From Neoconidiobolus thromboides FSU 785 (lineage: Eukaryota; Fungi; Entomophthoromycota), in NCBI GenBank assembly GCA_025603075.1, contig MU626315.1:1-64000 (forward strand): DNA of 64,000 bases, given 5' to 3'. Position 1 is the stretch's first letter; every line of letters begins with the position of its first letter. The position numbers were made by a program, and so were the translations under genes. Positions 7,099 to 30,490 of this stretch are shown in pieces. Below the pieces are notes generated by a model. It was not told the DNA's origin and did no database searches. It saw only the letters and a list, made by a program, of their open reading frames with translations.

Positions 7099-7680
7099 CT
7101 ATATTGATAAAGGAGAAGAATCCAAGCCTTTAGCTTCCAGTTCTTTAATTGGTGTCAAATGAGGCTTAAACGTATCTAAATTCAGTTGCATAGAATTAAC
7201 ATCATTTTGCTGGCTTTGGTTGAAATAAATGTTGTTAGTAATCAAATCTTTTGGCTTTAAGATAGGTGGGTAAACTTGTTCATGACTTATCATTTCTTTA
7301 CCACTATAATATTCTTCACCATTACTAAACGTATCATGTGTTGGTGTATTTGACCCGCGATTTCGTTGGGGCGGATAACTCATAGAAAAATTGTTTCTGC
7401 CCTCATGTATCAGATCAGAAATAGAAGTAAATTTTTTACTCACTCGCGTAGTATTCTCAGGTTTGTTAGCTTTTGGTTTACATCCTCTTTTGCGATTGTT
7501 GAACCACACTTGAACTTTACTTAATGGTATATCTAATTCTTCAGCAAGTTGCTTTTTTATTAAGTTTCCAGGGTTTGGATTCTTTCTAAAGTGTTCATTT
7601 AATACCTCCAGTTGATGGGGCTGGAATTTATAACGATGTTGATCCGGTTCATATACTTTTATTTTTATCCTTTCTTCCAT
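7099..7680 (-). CDS. Homeodomain transcription factor (193 aa)
   Basis: RYKFQPHQLEVLNEHFRKNPNP...KQLAEELDIPLSKVQVWFNNRKR fits the homeodomain (F8, L16, F20, W48, F49, N51). ATG at 7680 has a caaaATG context; the ORF extends upstream to 7746. Confidence 0.85.
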   Translation of the reverse strand: MEERIKIKVYEPDQHRYKFQPHQLEVLNEHFRKNPNPGNLIKKQLAEELDIPLSKVQVWFNNRKRGCKPKANKPENTTRVSKKFTSISDLIHEGRNNFSMSYPPQRNRGSNTPTHDTFSNGEEYYSGKEMISHEQVYPPILKPKDLITNNIYFNQSQQNDVNSMQLNLDTFKPHLTPIKELEAKGLDSSPLSI

Positions 7681-9165
7681 TTTGAATAAAAAAGTGATTT
7701 TTTTTATGCCATTGTTTTTGTACTCCATTTTAGCGCCCTCAGCCAATTAAAAGACTTGGAGTGATTCCTCATTTCATAAGTGGATTTTTCAATCATTCCA
7801 TTCTTGAAGCGTAGAATATGCTTTGTTCAATGTATTCCAATAGAAATGGATAGCAGACAAACATTATTGGCAGTCTATTTTTAATTAATTTCCTATACGC
7901 TATTTTATTATCAGCTTGATAGGATATTCTTAATTAACTATGAATAGTAACTTTACTTTTAGTTTCAATACATCTATGAAAGCTTTAATTTATAAATATA
8001 ATATTATAATAGCATAACAATAAGCTTTTTAGAAATATAAGATACAGTTAATACAAGGCTAAACATAGTATTTTTAAATACCATTCAGCTTTTTATTTAT
8101 AGTGGATAGTTAAAAAAATATTTAGTAGCAACAGTTAATAGAATTTGTGATATTAGACTTAATTAAGCTACAATTCTCATTTGATTTGAGAACAAGGGAC
8201 TTAACCTTTGAGCAATAAAAAATAAGAAAATTTTAAATAAAATTCAAGACATTTCAGTATTTCAAATATTCTATTTTATTTCAAATTCTGTTCTACAATA
8301 CTGTACAAAATAAATTCACCAGTTTCTAAAGTTTTAAAACATTTTTAGTGCCACAAAATTTAATGATCATTTTAATTTCAGGAACATTTAAGATTTTTAT
8401 GACCTTTCAAAGATTAAAAGATTCAATATTGTGAAACAAGCAAGTGTTTCATTATATCTTATTATCCATTAATCAACCATAATGTCTGTTGAATATAGAC
8501 CAAAAAAAATATTATAATGTTCTAGATAAAAACAAAGTTACAAGAGCTTTCAATTTACTGTTAGATATCAATTGAGGTAGTGAAAAGTGGAACTTTTTGT
8601 CTTTATAACTTTGTTATTTTTAGTTAAGCCAGTTTCAGTGGATCATATAAAACTTTTCTCACATTTTACTTCCTGAAACAGTATATACCTTTGCTCATAT
8701 AGTAATATAATAGAAATTCAAGTAAGTAGATTCAAAGTTGAGCATGTAAAGTTATTTACTCAACTTAAATAATGGGGACATTTTCAAAATAAGGCTTGGT
8801 GTATATCTTTTGCCCTTGGATATATATAAGCTAAAAATGGGTATTATCCAGTTTGAAATTTAACTAAGCTTTTCATCTTTTTTCAAATTTGTTTTAGCAG
8901 TAAAAAGACCATTACTCTTGTGGTTGAGTTTATTTAAATCAAATATTATCTATTTTAAAGTAGAGCTTCAGTTATATAATCCTACATATTTAAGTTGGGA
9001 TCTAACTTTTAAATGTAATTTTACATTAAAACTTTGGTCTATCATTACTCTTTAAATATTCTAAAACTTTGTGATAGTCAAGCAAAATATAAAACAGTTG
9101 CTAGGCTAAATTAAACACTATAAAACCTTATAATTCATCAAAGCTGTCAATAATCTATAACAAAA

Positions 9166-10129: not shown

Positions 10130-10432
10130 ATGAGAGTTTTTGTATTCGCATTATTAATTTCAATCGTTCTTTCTATACCTCATCCAAAGCAGGTGCTTGG
10201 GATTCAAAATATAATCTCTGATTTTTCTTTAGATGTGTTAAGTAGTAAAGGCCCCCTTGCACTTGAAAGTATAAAACAAGATCAACTAGTGGCTGATGTA
10301 ACTGCACCAAAAGCATTGGGACAAGGACAAGGACAGTCACAACCACAATCACAACCACAATCACAATCACAATCACAATTACAATCACAACCACAACCAC
10401 AATCACAATTACAATCACAATTACAACCATAA
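10130..10432 (+). CDS. Small secreted protein (100 aa) with Gln/Ser/Pro-rich tail
   Basis: Signal peptide MRVFVFALLISIVLS; TATAAA about 40 bp upstream; C-terminal (QS/QP/QL)n encoded by a hexamer repeat. Confidence 0.7.
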   Translation: MRVFVFALLISIVLSIPHPKQVLGIQNIISDFSLDVLSSKGPLALESIKQDQLVADVTAPKALGQGQGQSQPQSQPQSQSQSQLQSQPQPQSQLQSQLQP

Positions 10433-10456
10433 TTGCAGTCATAATTACAACCACAG
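10319..10456 (+). repeat. Coding hexanucleotide microsatellite (CAA-NNN)n
   Basis: caatca/caacca/caatta units; the repeat continues past the TAA at 10430-10432. Confidence 0.9.
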
Positions 10457-13815: not shown

Positions 13816-14820
13816 TTATTTAAGTGAATCAAAGAAGGAATCTAATTCAATATTTCCGCCTGATATGATTAATCCGATATTTTTGACATCAGCATACTTT
13901 TGTTTAAATTCTTCATTGAATAAAATTGCAGCCAGAGGTACAGCACCAGAAGGCTCAACAACTAACTTCATTCGTTCCCAAATTATTCTCATAGCTTTGA
14001 TAATTTCATCTTCAGTGACAGTAAATATATCGTCCAAATTTTCTTTGATTATTCCATAAGTCAAATCACTCATACTAGATCTTAATCCATCTGCAATGGT
14101 ATTTGGTTTTACAGAAGGAACATACTTACCACTCTTAATTGATTGATAACAATCATCAGCACCTTTTGGTTCACCAGCAAACCCTTTGATGCTACTACTA
14201 AATCCTTTTACTGCTAAAAGAGTGCCAGATAATAGCCCACCTCCGCTAACAGGGGCAATTACTGCATCTAAAGCTACTCCCATTTCTTTAGTCTGCTTAA
14301 GTAACTCTAAAGCAGCTGTTCCTTGGCCGATTACAATATCTTTGTGATCAAAAGGAGGAATTAAATAGCCACCAGTTTCTTTAACAACCTTTTCAGCAGT
14401 TTCAACTCGACTTTCAGCTGATGGTCCAGATTCTACAATCTTAGCGCCATACCCTAAAACAGCTTTTACTTTTATTTTAGAGCAATTATTTGGAAGCACA
14501 ATAGTACTATTGATTCCAAAAGATTTAGAGGCTAAAGCTACTGCTTGTGCGTGGTTTCCACTAGAATGAGCTACTATTCCTTTCTTACGGACTTCTTCAA
14601 TACCTACTGATTCTACTAATTGACCTATTGCATAAGTGGCGCCTCGAATCTTAAAGGCACCTATTTTTTGTAAATTCTCACATTTAAAATATAGGTTTTT
14701 GCCATCAGTCATAGAGTCTATACTACTACAAGTCAACACTGGAGTTGTGTGAATTTTTCCTTCAAGCTTTGAAGCTGCATGTTCAATATCATTCAAAGTC
14801 AATTTAATTGTGTTTGTCAT
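13816..14820 (-). CDS. SRY1: PLP-dependent serine racemase / hydroxyaspartate ammonia-lyase (fold type II)
   Basis: FKCENLQKIGAFKIRGA (PLP lysine), HSSGNHAQA, GQGT, PVSGGGLLSG, TIADGL, EPSGA. Confidence 0.85.
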   Translation of the reverse strand: MTNTIKLTLNDIEHAASKLEGKIHTTPVLTCSSIDSMTDGKNLYFKCENLQKIGAFKIRGATYAIGQLVESVGIEEVRKKGIVAHSSGNHAQAVALASKSFGINSTIVLPNNCSKIKVKAVLGYGAKIVESGPSAESRVETAEKVVKETGGYLIPPFDHKDIVIGQGTAALELLKQTKEMGVALDAVIAPVSGGGLLSGTLLAVKGFSSSIKGFAGEPKGADDCYQSIKSGKYVPSVKPNTIADGLRSSMSDLTYGIIKENLDDIFTVTEDEIIKAMRIIWERMKLVVEPSGAVPLAAILFNEEFKQKYADVKNIGLIISGGNIELDSFFDSLK

Positions 14821-15770: not shown

Positions 15771-16514
15771 TTAAACACGTTTCTTAAAAGCCCCTCTAGC
15801 TGCTCCAGCTACTTGTAAGTCTTGCAATGAATCATCGACTGCAGAAAAATCAAAGAAGTCTTCATCACGTCTTTCTAACGACCCTTCCTTCTTTATGAAC
15901 TCTCCTCTAGCTAATCCAGCTACTTGTAAGTCCTGTAATGAGTCATCGATTGCAGAAAACTCGAAGAAATCTCCAGAACGTCTTTCTAACGACCCTTCCT
16001 TTTTTATGAACTCTCCTCTAGCTAATCCAGCTACTTGTAAGTCTTGTAATGAGTCATCGATTGCAGAAAAATCAAAAAAGTCTTCAGCACGTTTAGCAAG
16101 TGATCCCTCTTTCTTTTTAAAATTTCCTCTAGCTGCGCCAGCTACTTGTAAGTCTTGCAATGAATCATCGACTGCAGAAAAATCAAAGAAGCTTTCACCA
16201 CGTTTTGCCAGAGATCCTTCTTTCTTTTTAAAGTTCCCTCTAGCTAATCCAGCTACTTGTAAGTCCTGTAATGAGTCATCGACTCCAGAAAAATCAAAAA
16301 AGTCTTCAGCACGTCTTTTTAATGGTATTTCGCTCTTTTGACGGAACTTACCATCACCTAGAGCAGTAACTTGTAGCCTATCCAATGAATTTCCTAGTAA
16401 AGCAAAGCCTTCTACAGGGGCTGGATTACGTCTAATTAAATTGGAGTCGATAGGTAATGAAGTGTAACCTAAAATTAAGCATGAAACGATGATGGAAACT
16501 ATGTTTGCTTTCAT
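15771..16514 (-). CDS. Kex2-processed repeat protein (KEP) precursor A, 247 aa: signal peptide, one divergent unit and five 37-aa repeats
   Basis: Repeat AEDFFDFS(G/A)(V/I)DDSLQDLQVAG(L/A)ARG(N/E/A)F(K/I)KKEGSL(A/E)(K/R)R; every unit is preceded by KR/RR; 111-bp nucleotide period. Confidence 0.92.
   Translation of the reverse strand: MKANIVSIIVSCLILGYTSLPIDSNLIRRNPAPVEGFALLGNSLDRLQVTALGDGKFRQKSEIPLKRRAEDFFDFSGVDDSLQDLQVAGLARGNFKKKEGSLAKRGESFFDFSAVDDSLQDLQVAGAARGNFKKKEGSLAKRAEDFFDFSAIDDSLQDLQVAGLARGEFIKKEGSLERRSGDFFEFSAIDDSLQDLQVAGLARGEFIKKEGSLERRDEDFFDFSAVDDSLQDLQVAGAARGAFKKRV
15774..16310 (-). repeat. Coding tandem repeat, 111-bp period, about 5 units
   Basis: ccagctacttgtaagtc..g.aatga.tcatcga recurs every 111 bp. 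Confidence 0.95.
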
Positions 16515-16882
16515 TATTATTAAATCAAAGATATTTATAAAATAGTATAGACAGCAATCAATTGAACTTTGCTTTTATACACTTTTGCTTTTAAAATTTA
16601 CATTGTTTTATTTTGCTATAAATTAATTCTCCTGTTACTTATTCTTACAATAAACTAAAAATTCAAAATTTCCGTTATAATAGTCTAATCTTCAGTTGAG
16701 CTTAAAATTTGTAGGAATTAAAAATTCATTCTATTTAGGAGTTTGATAGACTAAAGGAAATAAAAAATAGCTCGGAAATTACATTTGCACTTTTACAACT
16801 AAATATAAAAGGTCGACATAGATACTTGAAGTTAATTAAGTTATATTCTAATCATAAATACATTTTATATTAATCTTTAAGT
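16515..16882. promoter_or_regulatory. Bidirectional promoter of the divergent KEP pair
   Basis: 368-bp intergenic region with TATAAAAG on each strand (16579-16572 minus; 16804-16811 plus), about 60-80 bp upstream of each ATG. Confidence 0.7.
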
Positions 16883-17617
16883 ATGCAATTAACCCATATT
16901 ACTGTCTTGGTTTTATCTCTTTTAACTGGATACAGCTCCCTTGCAATCCCAAATCAAAATATCCAAAGACGTGCTGATGACTTTAAATTTTCACTAACAA
17001 AAGACTCCTTAAGTAGAATTGCTACTGGCCTTATAGCCAATAGCGAATTTGTGCCAAGAAAAATAGAAAAGCGCGATGAAAATGGTTTTGCATTTGCATT
17101 AGCTAGTAAATCATTACAAAGAGTAGGTGGTGGTATCGGAGGTATTCATGATTTTGATGGAACTAAAAAACAAAGACGTGCAGAAGATGGTTTTGGGGTT
17201 TCTTTAGCCAAGAACTCTGTGTCGAAAATAGGCGGTGGTATTGGAGGTATTCATGATTTTGATGGAACTAAAAAACAAAGACGTGCAGAAGATGGTTTTG
17301 GGGTTTCTTTAGCCAAGAACTCTGCGTCGAGAATAGGTGGTGGTATTGGAGGTATTCATGATTTTGATGGAACTAAAAAACAAAGACGTGCAGAAGATGG
17401 TTTTGGAGTTTCTATAGCCAAGAACTCTGCGTCGAAAATAGGTGGTGGTATTGGAGGTATTCATGATTTTGATGGAACTGACGAAAGAAGCAGCGGAACA
17501 GGTTCCGGAATTTTAGCTAAAAATCCACTAAGCTCTGGATTTTCTGGATCTCCCGCATCACCTGTAGGACTTGCAACACCTGCAACACCTGCAGCGCCCA
17601 TTAATCCAGCAGTTTAA
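16883..17617 (+). CDS. Kex2-processed repeat protein (KEP) precursor B, 244 aa: signal peptide, one divergent unit, four 35-aa repeats and a Pro/Ala tail
   Basis: Repeat AEDGFGVS(L/I)AKNS(V/A)S(K/R)IGGGIGGIHDFDGTKKQRR; units delimited by RR/KR; 105-bp period. Confidence 0.92.
   Translation: MQLTHITVLVLSLLTGYSSLAIPNQNIQRRADDFKFSLTKDSLSRIATGLIANSEFVPRKIEKRDENGFAFALASKSLQRVGGGIGGIHDFDGTKKQRRAEDGFGVSLAKNSVSKIGGGIGGIHDFDGTKKQRRAEDGFGVSLAKNSASRIGGGIGGIHDFDGTKKQRRAEDGFGVSIAKNSASKIGGGIGGIHDFDGTDERSSGTGSGILAKNPLSSGFSGSPASPVGLATPATPAAPINPAV
17075..17479 (+). repeat. Coding tandem repeat, 105-bp period, about 4 units
   Basis: ggtggtat.ggaggtattcatgattttgatggaact recurs every 105 bp. Confidence 0.95.
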
Positions 17618-19631: not shown

Positions 19632-20540
19632 TTATTTATATGTTGGTTTATACCATCTCCAGAAACCTTGACGATTTTGACTTCTCATCCATTTAAATCT
19701 TCTACCTGCCAATAGAGGGAATTGAACAATAGGACGTGGACATATACAAATGGGCGAAGTTGTTGGATTATTACAATTACAGCATATAAGGTCGCCCCCA
19801 TTTTTTTCACTTAATGATGAATTTAATTGCACCGTATCTAAATTTCCTGCTATATTATCAATTCCACCTTCATCTGGATTATTAAGTGAATCCGGTGCTT
19901 CAGGATCCATTAATTTTAATGGCAGTATTGAAGTAAATTTCATTCTATGAGATTTAAGATCAAATAAATTTGCCAAGTCAGATTCTAATAAATAGAATTA
20001 ATTTTTAAACAAAAAACTTATAATAGTAATACCAGATGATTGAACTAAAGAGTTTGATATTCCATCTTTAGGAGAAGAAGTTTGATGCGAATTAGACGAA
20101 TTCGAAGCTTTTAAAAGTTTACGAAGTCGACTATTTTCTTCTTCTATTTCATTTAGTCTTTCTTTTAAACACCCTATTTCTTTTTTACATACCTTTAAAG
20201 TGGCTTCAGTTGCTACAAGTATCTTTGCTTTAGTTTCTAAATCTTTAATGTGTTGATCTTTTCTTTGACGAAACGCTTTTTGCGCAGCTCGGTTTTGGGC
20301 TGCCCTTTTATTAACCATTTGTTTCTTTTTTTGATAACTTAGAGCTTCACTAGGCGCCATATGTGATAAATTACTATCATAAATCTGTTCATAATGTGGT
20401 TCCATACTTGGGTTTAACACGGTACTATTATATACCGATTGTGTGCCATTCCTTCTTTCATATTCCTCTAGAAATTTTCAATAAGATTTAGTTATAAATA
20501 TTAATATTAAGCTATTACCATGATTATTATAGTGATTCAT
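19632..20540 (-). CDS. Yap/AP-1-type bZIP transcription factor with C-terminal Cys cluster (about 269 aa, 3 exons)
   Basis: Exons 20540-20519, 20467-20033, 19984-19632 (810 nt, in frame); basic region KRAAQNRAAQKAFRQRK; C-terminal CCNCNNPTTSPICIC. Start codon less certain. Confidence 0.8.
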
Positions 20541-28693: not shown

Positions 28694-30490
28694 TTACTCT
28701 AAAATAGGTATCGGTGCCGCAAACAAATCCATCAACTCTTTAGATCTCTGGTGATCAATTAGTATCCCAAAATAAAAATTAACACTTCTAATATTAGTAA
28801 TACAACTACGTTCCGATCCAAAGTGACCCAACTCCGAATCTTCTATCTTTGTAAACTTAGCAAAGGTCGAGTGTACTGCAAACGACAGAATGACACTATT
28901 CATCTTAAGCAATGGGCCAAACTTAAAAAAATCCCCTTTCATCGATTCAGCTAAAAAAGTGATTGAACAAGCGGACAAAAACATTTGTTTTCGTAAATTG
29001 GGCATGATTAATTTACTAATGGCAGGGGCTATAAGGTATGCTTTTAAATATAAATAAATTTGAGCAACATGGTAAAATAAATGAAAGAGCAATAAAGAAT
29101 AGATAGAAAATAGATGCTTGTTAGATAATTCAAATTGTTTAAGTACATTAGCACACACAAGTTCAAGTTGTTTTTCAAACCTTGATATAAAACTTTCAAG
29201 CTCGCATGATGTGTTATGAAATTTCGCACTTCCACTATGGATGCTTTCAATGATCTCACATATTTTTACTGAAGCTAAGAAGCAGACTTGACAAAATGAA
29301 GAACCTGGAAAAGACTCCATAGGTGCAATAGTAGTTAAATTTAAATACGTATCCATGTCAAGATAAGGTCTTAATTTGCTTAAATTAAACCCTCTACCAC
29401 GGGTAAGGTTACATATTTTATCTTGCATATAACAGCATCGTAATAAATTCAATGCTTCAGAACGTTTTTCACCTTCAAGTGACAGTTGGTTGAAATCATT
29501 TAAACCCAAGTTTTGTATCATGTTATATTGTATTGCATTCAACTTTTCAACCAAAGAACATTCTCCATTGTAAAGCAATAAAATAGCTTGAAGTGAAGCT
29601 ATGGTTGGGTTAGCTATGTTTTCGTCCATAAGTGCGAGTGCTTTTTGATGAAAGTGTTTGGATAGTTCAAATCTACAGCCATTGAAATACATAGGTAGTG
29701 AAGCAAGGTAAGGGCTAGCAACAAAATAAATGGCATTAAGCAACATAGGGTTGATATAGCTGTTTGGATTACTTAAAGTCTTAAAAAATAGGTTTCTAGA
29801 AATTAAAGGGAAAAAAGAGTTAACTTGATTAAAGTAAACATTAATAAGGTGCAAGCTTTGTGCTCTCGAAATTTCAAAATCGAATTTTGTTCTCGTGAGA
29901 TATGTTGGGATATAGTCAAGTCCATTTAGTATTACTTTACAGTCCTGGCATGAGTTTTGTTCACAGCAAGTATTGATGGTGTACGTGTTATATAGTTTAC
30001 TTTTCCCTATATTGAATTTACTTGTGGCTTGGTTGAAGATCCATTTATCCAAATCATGGACCATACTCTCCATATTAGGGCCTACAATATCCACTATTTG
30101 TAGCAAAGGAAAATAGTTACTACGGACGGGACTGGAGTCCGCTAAGGAGGATAATGGAGAAAATCTTGTTGAGTTTGGGCTGGGATCCTTACTTGAGTCA
30201 GGAGAGTCAGGAGAGTCAGTTTTCAAAGTAAATTTGATATTATAAGGTTTTTTATTCTTTTCAACTTTTACTTTTTTCTGGGTTTTAATTTTAAACATGT
30301 GGATATTAGAAGAAGCTGAATCATAAAATCTCTTTAACTCATTACATAAAATTAACTTTTTAGAATAGCTACATAGTACTTTCTTTTTAATACATGAAGA
30401 ACAAATCGTTTCTCTATCACATTTCGTTTTGCTCTTTCGACATGGGTCGCATGCCACTAAAAATTTGCTTTTATAATCTACTTTATCCAT
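28694..30490 (-). CDS. Zn(II)2Cys6 transcription factor with fungal-specific TF domain (598 aa)
   Basis: ACDPCRKSKTKCDRETICSSCIKKKVLCSY; LINVYFNQVNSFFPLI...MLLNAIYFVAS middle region. Confidence 0.92.
   Translation of the reverse strand: MDKVDYKSKFLVACDPCRKSKTKCDRETICSSCIKKKVLCSYSKKLILCNELKRFYDSASSNIHMFKIKTQKKVKVEKNKKPYNIKFTLKTDSPDSPDSSKDPSPNSTRFSPLSSLADSSPVRSNYFPLLQIVDIVGPNMESMVHDLDKWIFNQATSKFNIGKSKLYNTYTINTCCEQNSCQDCKVILNGLDYIPTYLTRTKFDFEISRAQSLHLINVYFNQVNSFFPLISRNLFFKTLSNPNSYINPMLLNAIYFVASPYLASLPMYFNGCRFELSKHFHQKALALMDENIANPTIASLQAILLLYNGECSLVEKLNAIQYNMIQNLGLNDFNQLSLEGEKRSEALNLLRCCYMQDKICNLTRGRGFNLSKLRPYLDMDTYLNLTTIAPMESFPGSSFCQVCFLASVKICEIIESIHSGSAKFHNTSCELESFISRFEKQLELVCANVLKQFELSNKHLFSIYSLLLFHLFYHVAQIYLYLKAYLIAPAISKLIMPNLRKQMFLSACSITFLAESMKGDFFKFGPLLKMNSVILSFAVHSTFAKFTKIEDSELGHFGSERSCITNIRSVNFYFGILIDHQRSKELMDLFAAPIPILE

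Follow-up and report, generated by a model that had tools for sequence, protein, structure and literature searches.

Two divergent paralogous genes of Neoconidiobolus thromboides that probably encode KEX2-processed repeat proteins

The first 64 kb of scaffold MU626315.1 of Neoconidiobolus thromboides FSU 785 (GCA_025603075.1), called the window here, carry two adjacent genes, designated A and B, which probably encode paralogous KEX2-processed repeat proteins (KEPs). Window coordinates are identical to those of the record. An original prediction, made from the letters of the DNA alone, had described two intronless genes transcribed divergently and 368 bp apart, and the open reading frames (ORFs) were found at exactly the positions predicted; the public record, too, gives each of them a single exon, with protein lengths of 247 and 244 aa. 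The window has a GC content of approximately 27%, and the only long-period tandem arrays that Tandem Repeats Finder (TRF) detected in the 64 kb were those of genes A and B. The features of the locus are as follows.

15771-16514, minus strand: gene A, 247 aa, single exon, complete coding sequence, predicted KEP-type precursor (ORF list; public annotation identical)
15777-16310, minus strand: array of units A1-A5 (TRF and unit table)
16311-16427, minus strand: divergent first unit A0, residues 30-68, with two X-Pro dipeptides at its start and L-K-R-R at its end (alignment with A1, z 6.9)
16428-16514, minus strand: signal-like N-terminus and short pro-piece of A ending in L-I-R-R, residues 1-29 (hydropathy; aligns with the N-terminus of B, z 8.7)
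16515-16882: intergenic region common to A and B, 368 bp, 21.5% GC
16572-16579, minus strand: TATAAAAG (TATA box) of gene A, -65 to -58 from the ATG
16804-16811, plus strand: TATAAAAG (TATA box) of gene B, -79 to -72 from the ATG
16883-17617, plus strand: gene B, 244 aa, single exon, complete coding sequence, predicted KEP-type precursor, paralogue of A (ORF list; public annotation identical)
16883-16972, plus strand: putative signal and pro-piece of B ending in I-Q-R-R, residues 1-30 (hydropathy; alignment with A)
16973-17179, plus strand: divergent units B0 and B1 (B0 against A1, z 4.2; B0 against B2, z 9.8)
17180-17479, plus strand: near-identical units B2-B4 (nucleotide identity 96-97%)
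17480-17614, plus strand: C-terminal tail of B, 45 aa, rich in Ser, Gly, Pro and Ala, with neither a dibasic site nor a hydrophobic end

Just after the start, both proteins have some 11-13 uncharged, hydrophobic residues followed by small or polar ones, as judged by a hydropathy heuristic. In A, the nine-residue Kyte-Doolittle means reached 3.0 over residues 5-15, and the hydropathy scan revealed no later hydrophobic segment in either protein. Beyond the pro-piece and A0, gene A has four units of 37 aa (A1-A4, residues 69-216) that end in L-A-K-R or L-E-R-R and a last unit, A5, of 30 aa (residues 217-246) that ends in K-K-R and is followed by a single residue and the stop codon. TRF described this array as 4.8 copies of 111 bp with an 84% match. 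In gene B, B0 (residues 31-64, 34 aa) ends in I-E-K-R and is, among the B units, the closest to those of A. Units B1 (65-99), B2 (100-134) and B3 (135-169) have 35 aa each and all end in K-Q-R-R, while B4 (170-199) is a core of 30 aa that no dibasic site follows. The array of B, by TRF, has 3.4 copies of 105 bp with a 96% match. The predicted layout of signal, pro-piece ending in RR, repeats and dibasic sites thus held for both genes, but the unit counts given with it (five of 37 aa in A and four of 35 aa in B, each after one divergent unit) required correction: A consists of A0, four units of 37 aa and one of 30 aa, and B of two divergent units, two of 35 aa and a 30-aa core. A decayed additional unit that had been proposed in the tail of B was not recovered, the score at the DNA level being no better than that of shuffles.

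The relationship between the two genes is evident from several comparisons. BLASTP of whole A against whole B gave an E value of 1e-7, and the alignment brings the cleavage sites of the two proteins into correspondence over several units. The resemblance of the signal ends, noted in the original prediction, proved to be real, with a z score of 8.7 for the signal and pro-piece (residues 1-29 of A and 1-30 of B) that rose to 10.5 when the first unit was included. All 11 units of A and B could be aligned in a single register, in which Ser13 and Phe27 are invariant and Phe5 is present in 10 units. Most units have an acidic start, and the nine units that have a linker have a basic end. The identity between A and B units is only about 23-32%; nevertheless, the border sites occupy homologous positions in both paralogues. 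Over 20 nt spanning the RR/acidic junction, the two genes are 95% complementary to each other. The BLASTP result and the common register bear out the suggestion of an old inverted duplication. The simplest history would be the inverted duplication of a gene that already carried repeats, followed by independent amplification and homogenisation of each array. Homogenisation would be recent in B, since units B2-B4 are nearly identical in DNA, and old in A, where the units share 75-93% of their nucleotides, with a proportion of synonymous differences (pS) of 0.21-0.52 and a ratio of nonsynonymous to synonymous differences (pN/pS) of 0.15-0.44. The pair illustrates how KEP genes evolve: the cores diverged and the arrays were homogenised separately, while the processing sites, the 27-residue frame and Phe5, Ser13 and Phe27 were kept.

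Among the four full units of A, 65 of the 113 pairwise differences fell at third codon positions, and the pooled pN/pS was 0.25 at a pS of 0.42. These values are supportive of the view that the A units are old and have been kept at the protein level by purifying selection. The strand opposite the A array also carries an open frame of 148 aa (15895-16341, plus strand), wholly within the array and without a signal-like start, which we judged to be a by-product of repeats that hold the frame open.

The octamer TATAAAAG, a TATA-type element that had been reported ahead of each gene, is present there in the correct orientation, beginning at -65 in A and -79 in B. It occurs at chance density in a window of 27% GC (18 found, 15 expected from shuffles), so only its placement is informative. 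The earlier description of one bidirectional promoter was not sustained, as each gene has a TATA box of its own and the two are 224 bp apart. No similarity above chance was seen between the half of the intergenic region upstream of A and that upstream of B, and the possibility that the promoter was duplicated along with the genes was rejected on that basis. The intergenic region looks like two back-to-back core promoters, and it is possible that A and B share regulation.

The processing sites were examined at the 12 unit borders. The P1 residue is Arg and the P2 residue Lys or Arg at every border, while P4 is Leu at six, Lys at three, Ile at two and Phe at one. Kex2 has an almost invariant requirement for Arg at P1, and its preference is for a basic residue (Lys or Arg) at P2 and for an aliphatic one, such as Leu, at P4 (PMC8528282); the title of a study cited in that article refers to a dual specificity of Kex2 at P4. 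The border residues of A and B fit this preference. The alignment suggests that each unit consists of a conserved core of 27 residues and a variable basic linker of 3-12 residues, the limit of the core being set where it is because Phe27 is invariant and, in each gene, the final unit ends right behind the core. The core of about 27-30 aa proposed in the original prediction is plausible on the same grounds. If the linkers serve only to separate the products, it would be expected that A ends just after a basic site and that B4 has no linker, as is the case. The X-Pro signature of Ste13-type processing is confined to two places, the beginning of A0 and the position that follows the presumed cleavage of the signal, and is absent from the repeated units. 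Cys, Tyr and Trp are absent from the predicted mature parts; there is no Cys anywhere in B and none in A after the signal region.

These properties were compared with the definitions used in two surveys of fungal genomes, in which a KEP has three or more tandem repeats, each 8-100 aa long (Umemura 2020, PMC7329392), or yields at least four fragments after in silico cutting at KR or RR (Le Marquer et al. 2019, PMC6339444), together with an N-terminal signal peptide for the endoplasmic reticulum (ER), no other transmembrane segment and Kex2 sites between the repeats. Gene A has six units of 30-39 aa and gene B five of 30-35 aa, KR or RR is present at 12/12 borders, cutting in silico gave nine fragments from A and six from B, and the hydropathy heuristic indicated a signal-like N-terminus in both. 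By sequence, both proteins thus fall within the two definitions. That A and B are paralogous KEPs is, in our assessment, probable. KEPs are widespread, with 7,878 genes in 1,345 of 1,461 fungal assemblies, and Zoopagomycota rank first in the number per strain (PMC7329392). Duplicated strain-specific KEPs are common in Zoopagomycota and are also typical of Chytridiomycota and Basidiomycota (PMC7329392, PMC6339444), and the peptides tend to be longer in early-diverging groups (PMC6339444). Like other KEPs, A and B have a (here putative) signal peptide and tandem near-identical units separated by KR or RR, and their units of 35-37 aa lie within the 25-50-aa class. The design is thus an ordinary one, found in most fungi, and the pair opens no new category of peptide precursor; what is new is the sequence of the peptides, which match none described. 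A head-to-head pair with traceable homology between units is a tidy but unsurprising variant.

From the sequence we infer the following route of secretion, cleavage and trimming. The hydrophobic N-terminus would take each precursor into the ER, a late-Golgi kexin would cut after each (L/I/K)-x-(K/R)-R and a Kex1-type carboxypeptidase would then trim the basic ends, so that several copies of linear, Cys-free peptides would be secreted. Gene A would give rise to five near-identical acidic peptides of 35 aa after trimming and one divergent peptide; if the internal KK were also cut, the products would be the 27-aa core ending in the invariant Phe and a 5-aa spacer. Gene B would yield two divergent peptides as well as two or three Gly-rich ones that are nearly identical and 30-33 aa long, and its last core would stay joined to the Ser/Gly/Pro/Ala tail, reminiscent of the larger product of Rep1.

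For the 27-mers of A the predicted net charge lies between -4 and -6, and for the peptides of B between -2 and 0. The peptides had been expected to be amphipathic, an expectation that the calculations did not support. The maximal helical hydrophobic moment of the A peptides is 0.18-0.20, below that of 87-91% of shuffled sequences, and that of the B peptides, 0.36-0.42, is not significant relative to shuffles; an amphipathic helix was rejected for A and is unsupported for B. The related idea of a membrane-active toxin fared no better, as anionic peptides with moments no higher than those of shuffles are the opposite of candidalysin.

Searches for relatives were in line with the original prediction, in which neither sequence had been recognised as a described family. 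There was no match to Pfam for A or B, even at an E value of 1, none to sequences in the PDB, none in scans of JGI metagenomes and none in word-based protein searches with the full-length proteins, those with B being subject to length limits. The exact A and B proteins are both absent from a collection of 15 billion proteins, so self-hits were not expected in the protein searches; the protein encoded by the neighbouring PALP gene is present in the same collection. A check against the published KEP catalogues, which the original prediction had proposed, located none of three motifs taken from A and B in the supplements of both surveys (PMC6339444, PMC7329392). A was also compared exhaustively, by phmmer, with 1.84 billion representatives, which gave eight weak hits, the best with an E value of 7e-8, all of them long repeat proteins. 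None looked like a fungal KEP and no similarity to Rep1 was seen in this comparison, made against a library that carries no organism names; B was searched with length limits only. Five of the eight (P0003, P0004, P0006, P0007 and P0009) look like phage tail-fibre proteins with a similar repeat period of about 37 aa. When three of these were compared with PHROG families, P0004 (best E value 1e-53) and P0009 (9e-12) matched tail-fibre families, and P0003 matched only families of unknown function. A itself matched no PHROG tail-fibre family and hit only two unrelated families, with E values of 6e-4 and 3e-3 and with no stretch passing; its assignment as a phage tail-fibre repeat protein was rejected because the families matched by P0004 and P0009 were not among its hits. 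A two-unit piece of A scored only 24.6 bits against P0003. The latter lies on a 1.9-kb contig without informative context. Another weak hit, P0005 (969 aa), carries a signal-like segment and then a 20-aa unit, with KK at its end, in approximately 25 copies, and resembles a repeat-peptide precursor. The weak hits of A are probably the result of chance inflated by repeats, or of convergence. The word orphan, as applied to these genes, means that there are no close kin, as the phmmer search with A would barely detect a relative as distant as B.

Several observations weigh against the interpretation of A and B as KEPs. The antisense frame of the A array also has a low pN/pS, 0.34, and the selection test alone consequently does not fix the frame. 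No orthologue of A or B was found with which the conservation of the border sites could be compared. Finally, one of five AlphaFold2 (AF2) models of A has a mean predicted local distance difference test score (pLDDT) of 67.8 and a predicted template modelling score (pTM) of 0.69, and shows an all-beta repeat with one long strand per unit. This model raises the question of whether A, and B possibly as well, might function intact as a beta-rich repeat protein that is secreted or belongs to the cell wall, with the dibasic motifs in surface loops. The weak likeness between the unit core of A and phage tail-fibre repeats of about 37-aa period, to which five of the eight weak hits belong, points in the same direction. 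However, the other four models of A were poor (pLDDT 38-48), B gave no confident fold (mean pLDDT 41) and Foldseek found no structural analogue of the A model in the PDB (best E value 0.03, TM < 0.25). AF2 was run without an alignment on repeat sequences, a setting known to yield over-regular models, and A does not match the PHROG tail-fibre families. Moreover, an intact protein gives no reason for Kex2 sites, with an aliphatic P4, at every border in both paralogues. Although this is the foremost of the alternatives, we consider it unlikely that the proteins act in this form.

The possibility that A and B are non-functional chance ORFs held open by minisatellite repeats draws on the fact that the frames are open on both strands, as the antisense ORF of 148 aa illustrates; because repeats keep both strands open, an open frame by itself proves nothing. 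The absence of both exact proteins from the 15-billion-protein collection also favours it. Chance ORFs, on the other hand, would not account for the way in which both frames pass beyond the arrays into non-repetitive and mutually similar signal and pro regions, nor for differences between units that are mostly at third positions (pN/pS 0.25), an architecture kept in two diverged paralogues and TATA boxes that are correctly placed. Both genes are also called in the public annotation, and an origin by chance is very improbable. A still more improbable proposal is that A and B are precursors of RiPPs (peptides that ribosomes synthesize and that are modified after translation) of the dikaritin type, for example ustiloxin or phomopsin, whose short cores are cut out and cyclised by clustered enzymes. 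Dikaritin precursors of the UstA and PhomA type do share the layout of a signal peptide and repeats separated by Kex2 sites, but they are recognised by a DUF3328 (UstYa) gene within about 15 genes and by a short Tyr-containing core. The called genes of the window and its ORFs included no DUF3328/UstYa, tyrosinase or methyltransferase gene, Tyr, Trp and Cys are missing from the units, and the conserved part, 27 aa, is far longer than a RiPP core of 4-10 aa. In addition, none of 185 Zoopagomycota KEPs was accompanied by DUF3328 (PMC7329392).

With a KEP pair as the preferred reading, A and B can be compared with the characterised peptide precursors. The alpha-factor genes MF(alpha)1 and MF(alpha)2 have the same pre-pro layout and repeats, from which Kex2, Kex1 and Ste13 free the pheromone in the Golgi (PMC6339444), and the X-Pro start of A0 is a further likeness. 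However, A and B lack a long pro-region and matches to Pfam MF_alpha and MF_alpha_N, their units begin with AE, GE, SG or DE rather than X-Ala or X-Pro, and their cores are 27-35 aa compared to 9-24 aa. Membership of the alpha-factor family was rejected on the basis of the Pfam result at an E value of 1, the restricted occurrence of the Ste13 signature and the length of the cores. Rep1 of Ustilago maydis likewise has a signal and repeats that are cut at Kex2 sites into peptides of 34-53 aa, a size comparable to that of the A and B units, with one larger C-terminal product that is comparable to the uncut end of B, and the beta strands of the A units in the AF2 model are a possible additional likeness. 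Rep1 differs in having 652 aa and 12 repeats, and its peptides are described as amphipathic, whereas those of A and B are not significantly so. Ece1 of Candida albicans is similar in size (271 aa) and has a signal peptide and seven KR sites at which Kex2 and then Kex1 generate peptides about 30 aa in length. Candidalysin combines hydrophobicity and positive charge with amphipathicity, having a charge of +3, a grand average of hydropathy (GRAVY) of 1.13 and a moment of 0.48, computed from the sequence in PMC5784256. The corresponding values are -5, -0.09 and 0.18 for A and -2, 0.0 and 0.37 for B, and an Ece1/candidalysin-like toxin was rejected, since all three parameters are strongly different. 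A and B differ from the dikaritins in that DUF3328 is missing from their neighbourhood, their units lack Tyr and these units are far longer than RiPP cores. Hydrophobins were rejected as well: the eight-cysteine pattern is absent, with no Cys after the signal in A and none in B, and there was no Pfam hit.

Two reports (PMC9769878, PMC6339444) describe KEP-derived peptides as numerous among fungi and their functions as largely unknown. For the products of A and B, we rank extracellular signalling or self-assembly at the surface or cell wall above membrane lysis, which is placed lower because the peptides are anionic and not amphipathic. A more specific proposal, that the genes form a lineage-restricted pair of extracellular peptide signals (pheromone- or quorum-like) or a repellent-like surface-assembling system, draws on the architecture and on the selection seen in the units; it is tentative and, on balance, unlikely. 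If it were true, a single locus would, through its two diverged paralogues, supply two specificities, and would do so in a fungus that belongs to none of the groups with characterised peptides of this kind. The orphan family in any case adds two peptide types to the KEP catalogue, with exact peptide masses to look for.

The called neighbours in the window are ordinary and encode homeodomain, STIMATE, PDCD5-like, PALP, bZIP, kinase, fungal Zn2Cys6, RagA, DUF4419, lipase, MFS and exportin-T proteins. The genes for three transcription factors lie within about 12 kb of the pair, with no link to it: homeodomain (7099-7746, minus strand), bZIP (19998-20420, minus strand) and Zn2Cys6 (28694-30490, minus strand). 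The single-exon PALP gene (13816-14820, minus strand), of the threonine dehydratase or serine racemase type, is 950 bp from gene A. Among the best 120 matches of its protein, with 47-55% identity, the named ones were all bacterial or archaeal and none was a named fungal protein; this could reflect horizontal acquisition or be a mere effect of the composition of the database and the word prefilter. An ACAATC hexanucleotide microsatellite of 20.5 copies is located at 10333-10455 of the window.

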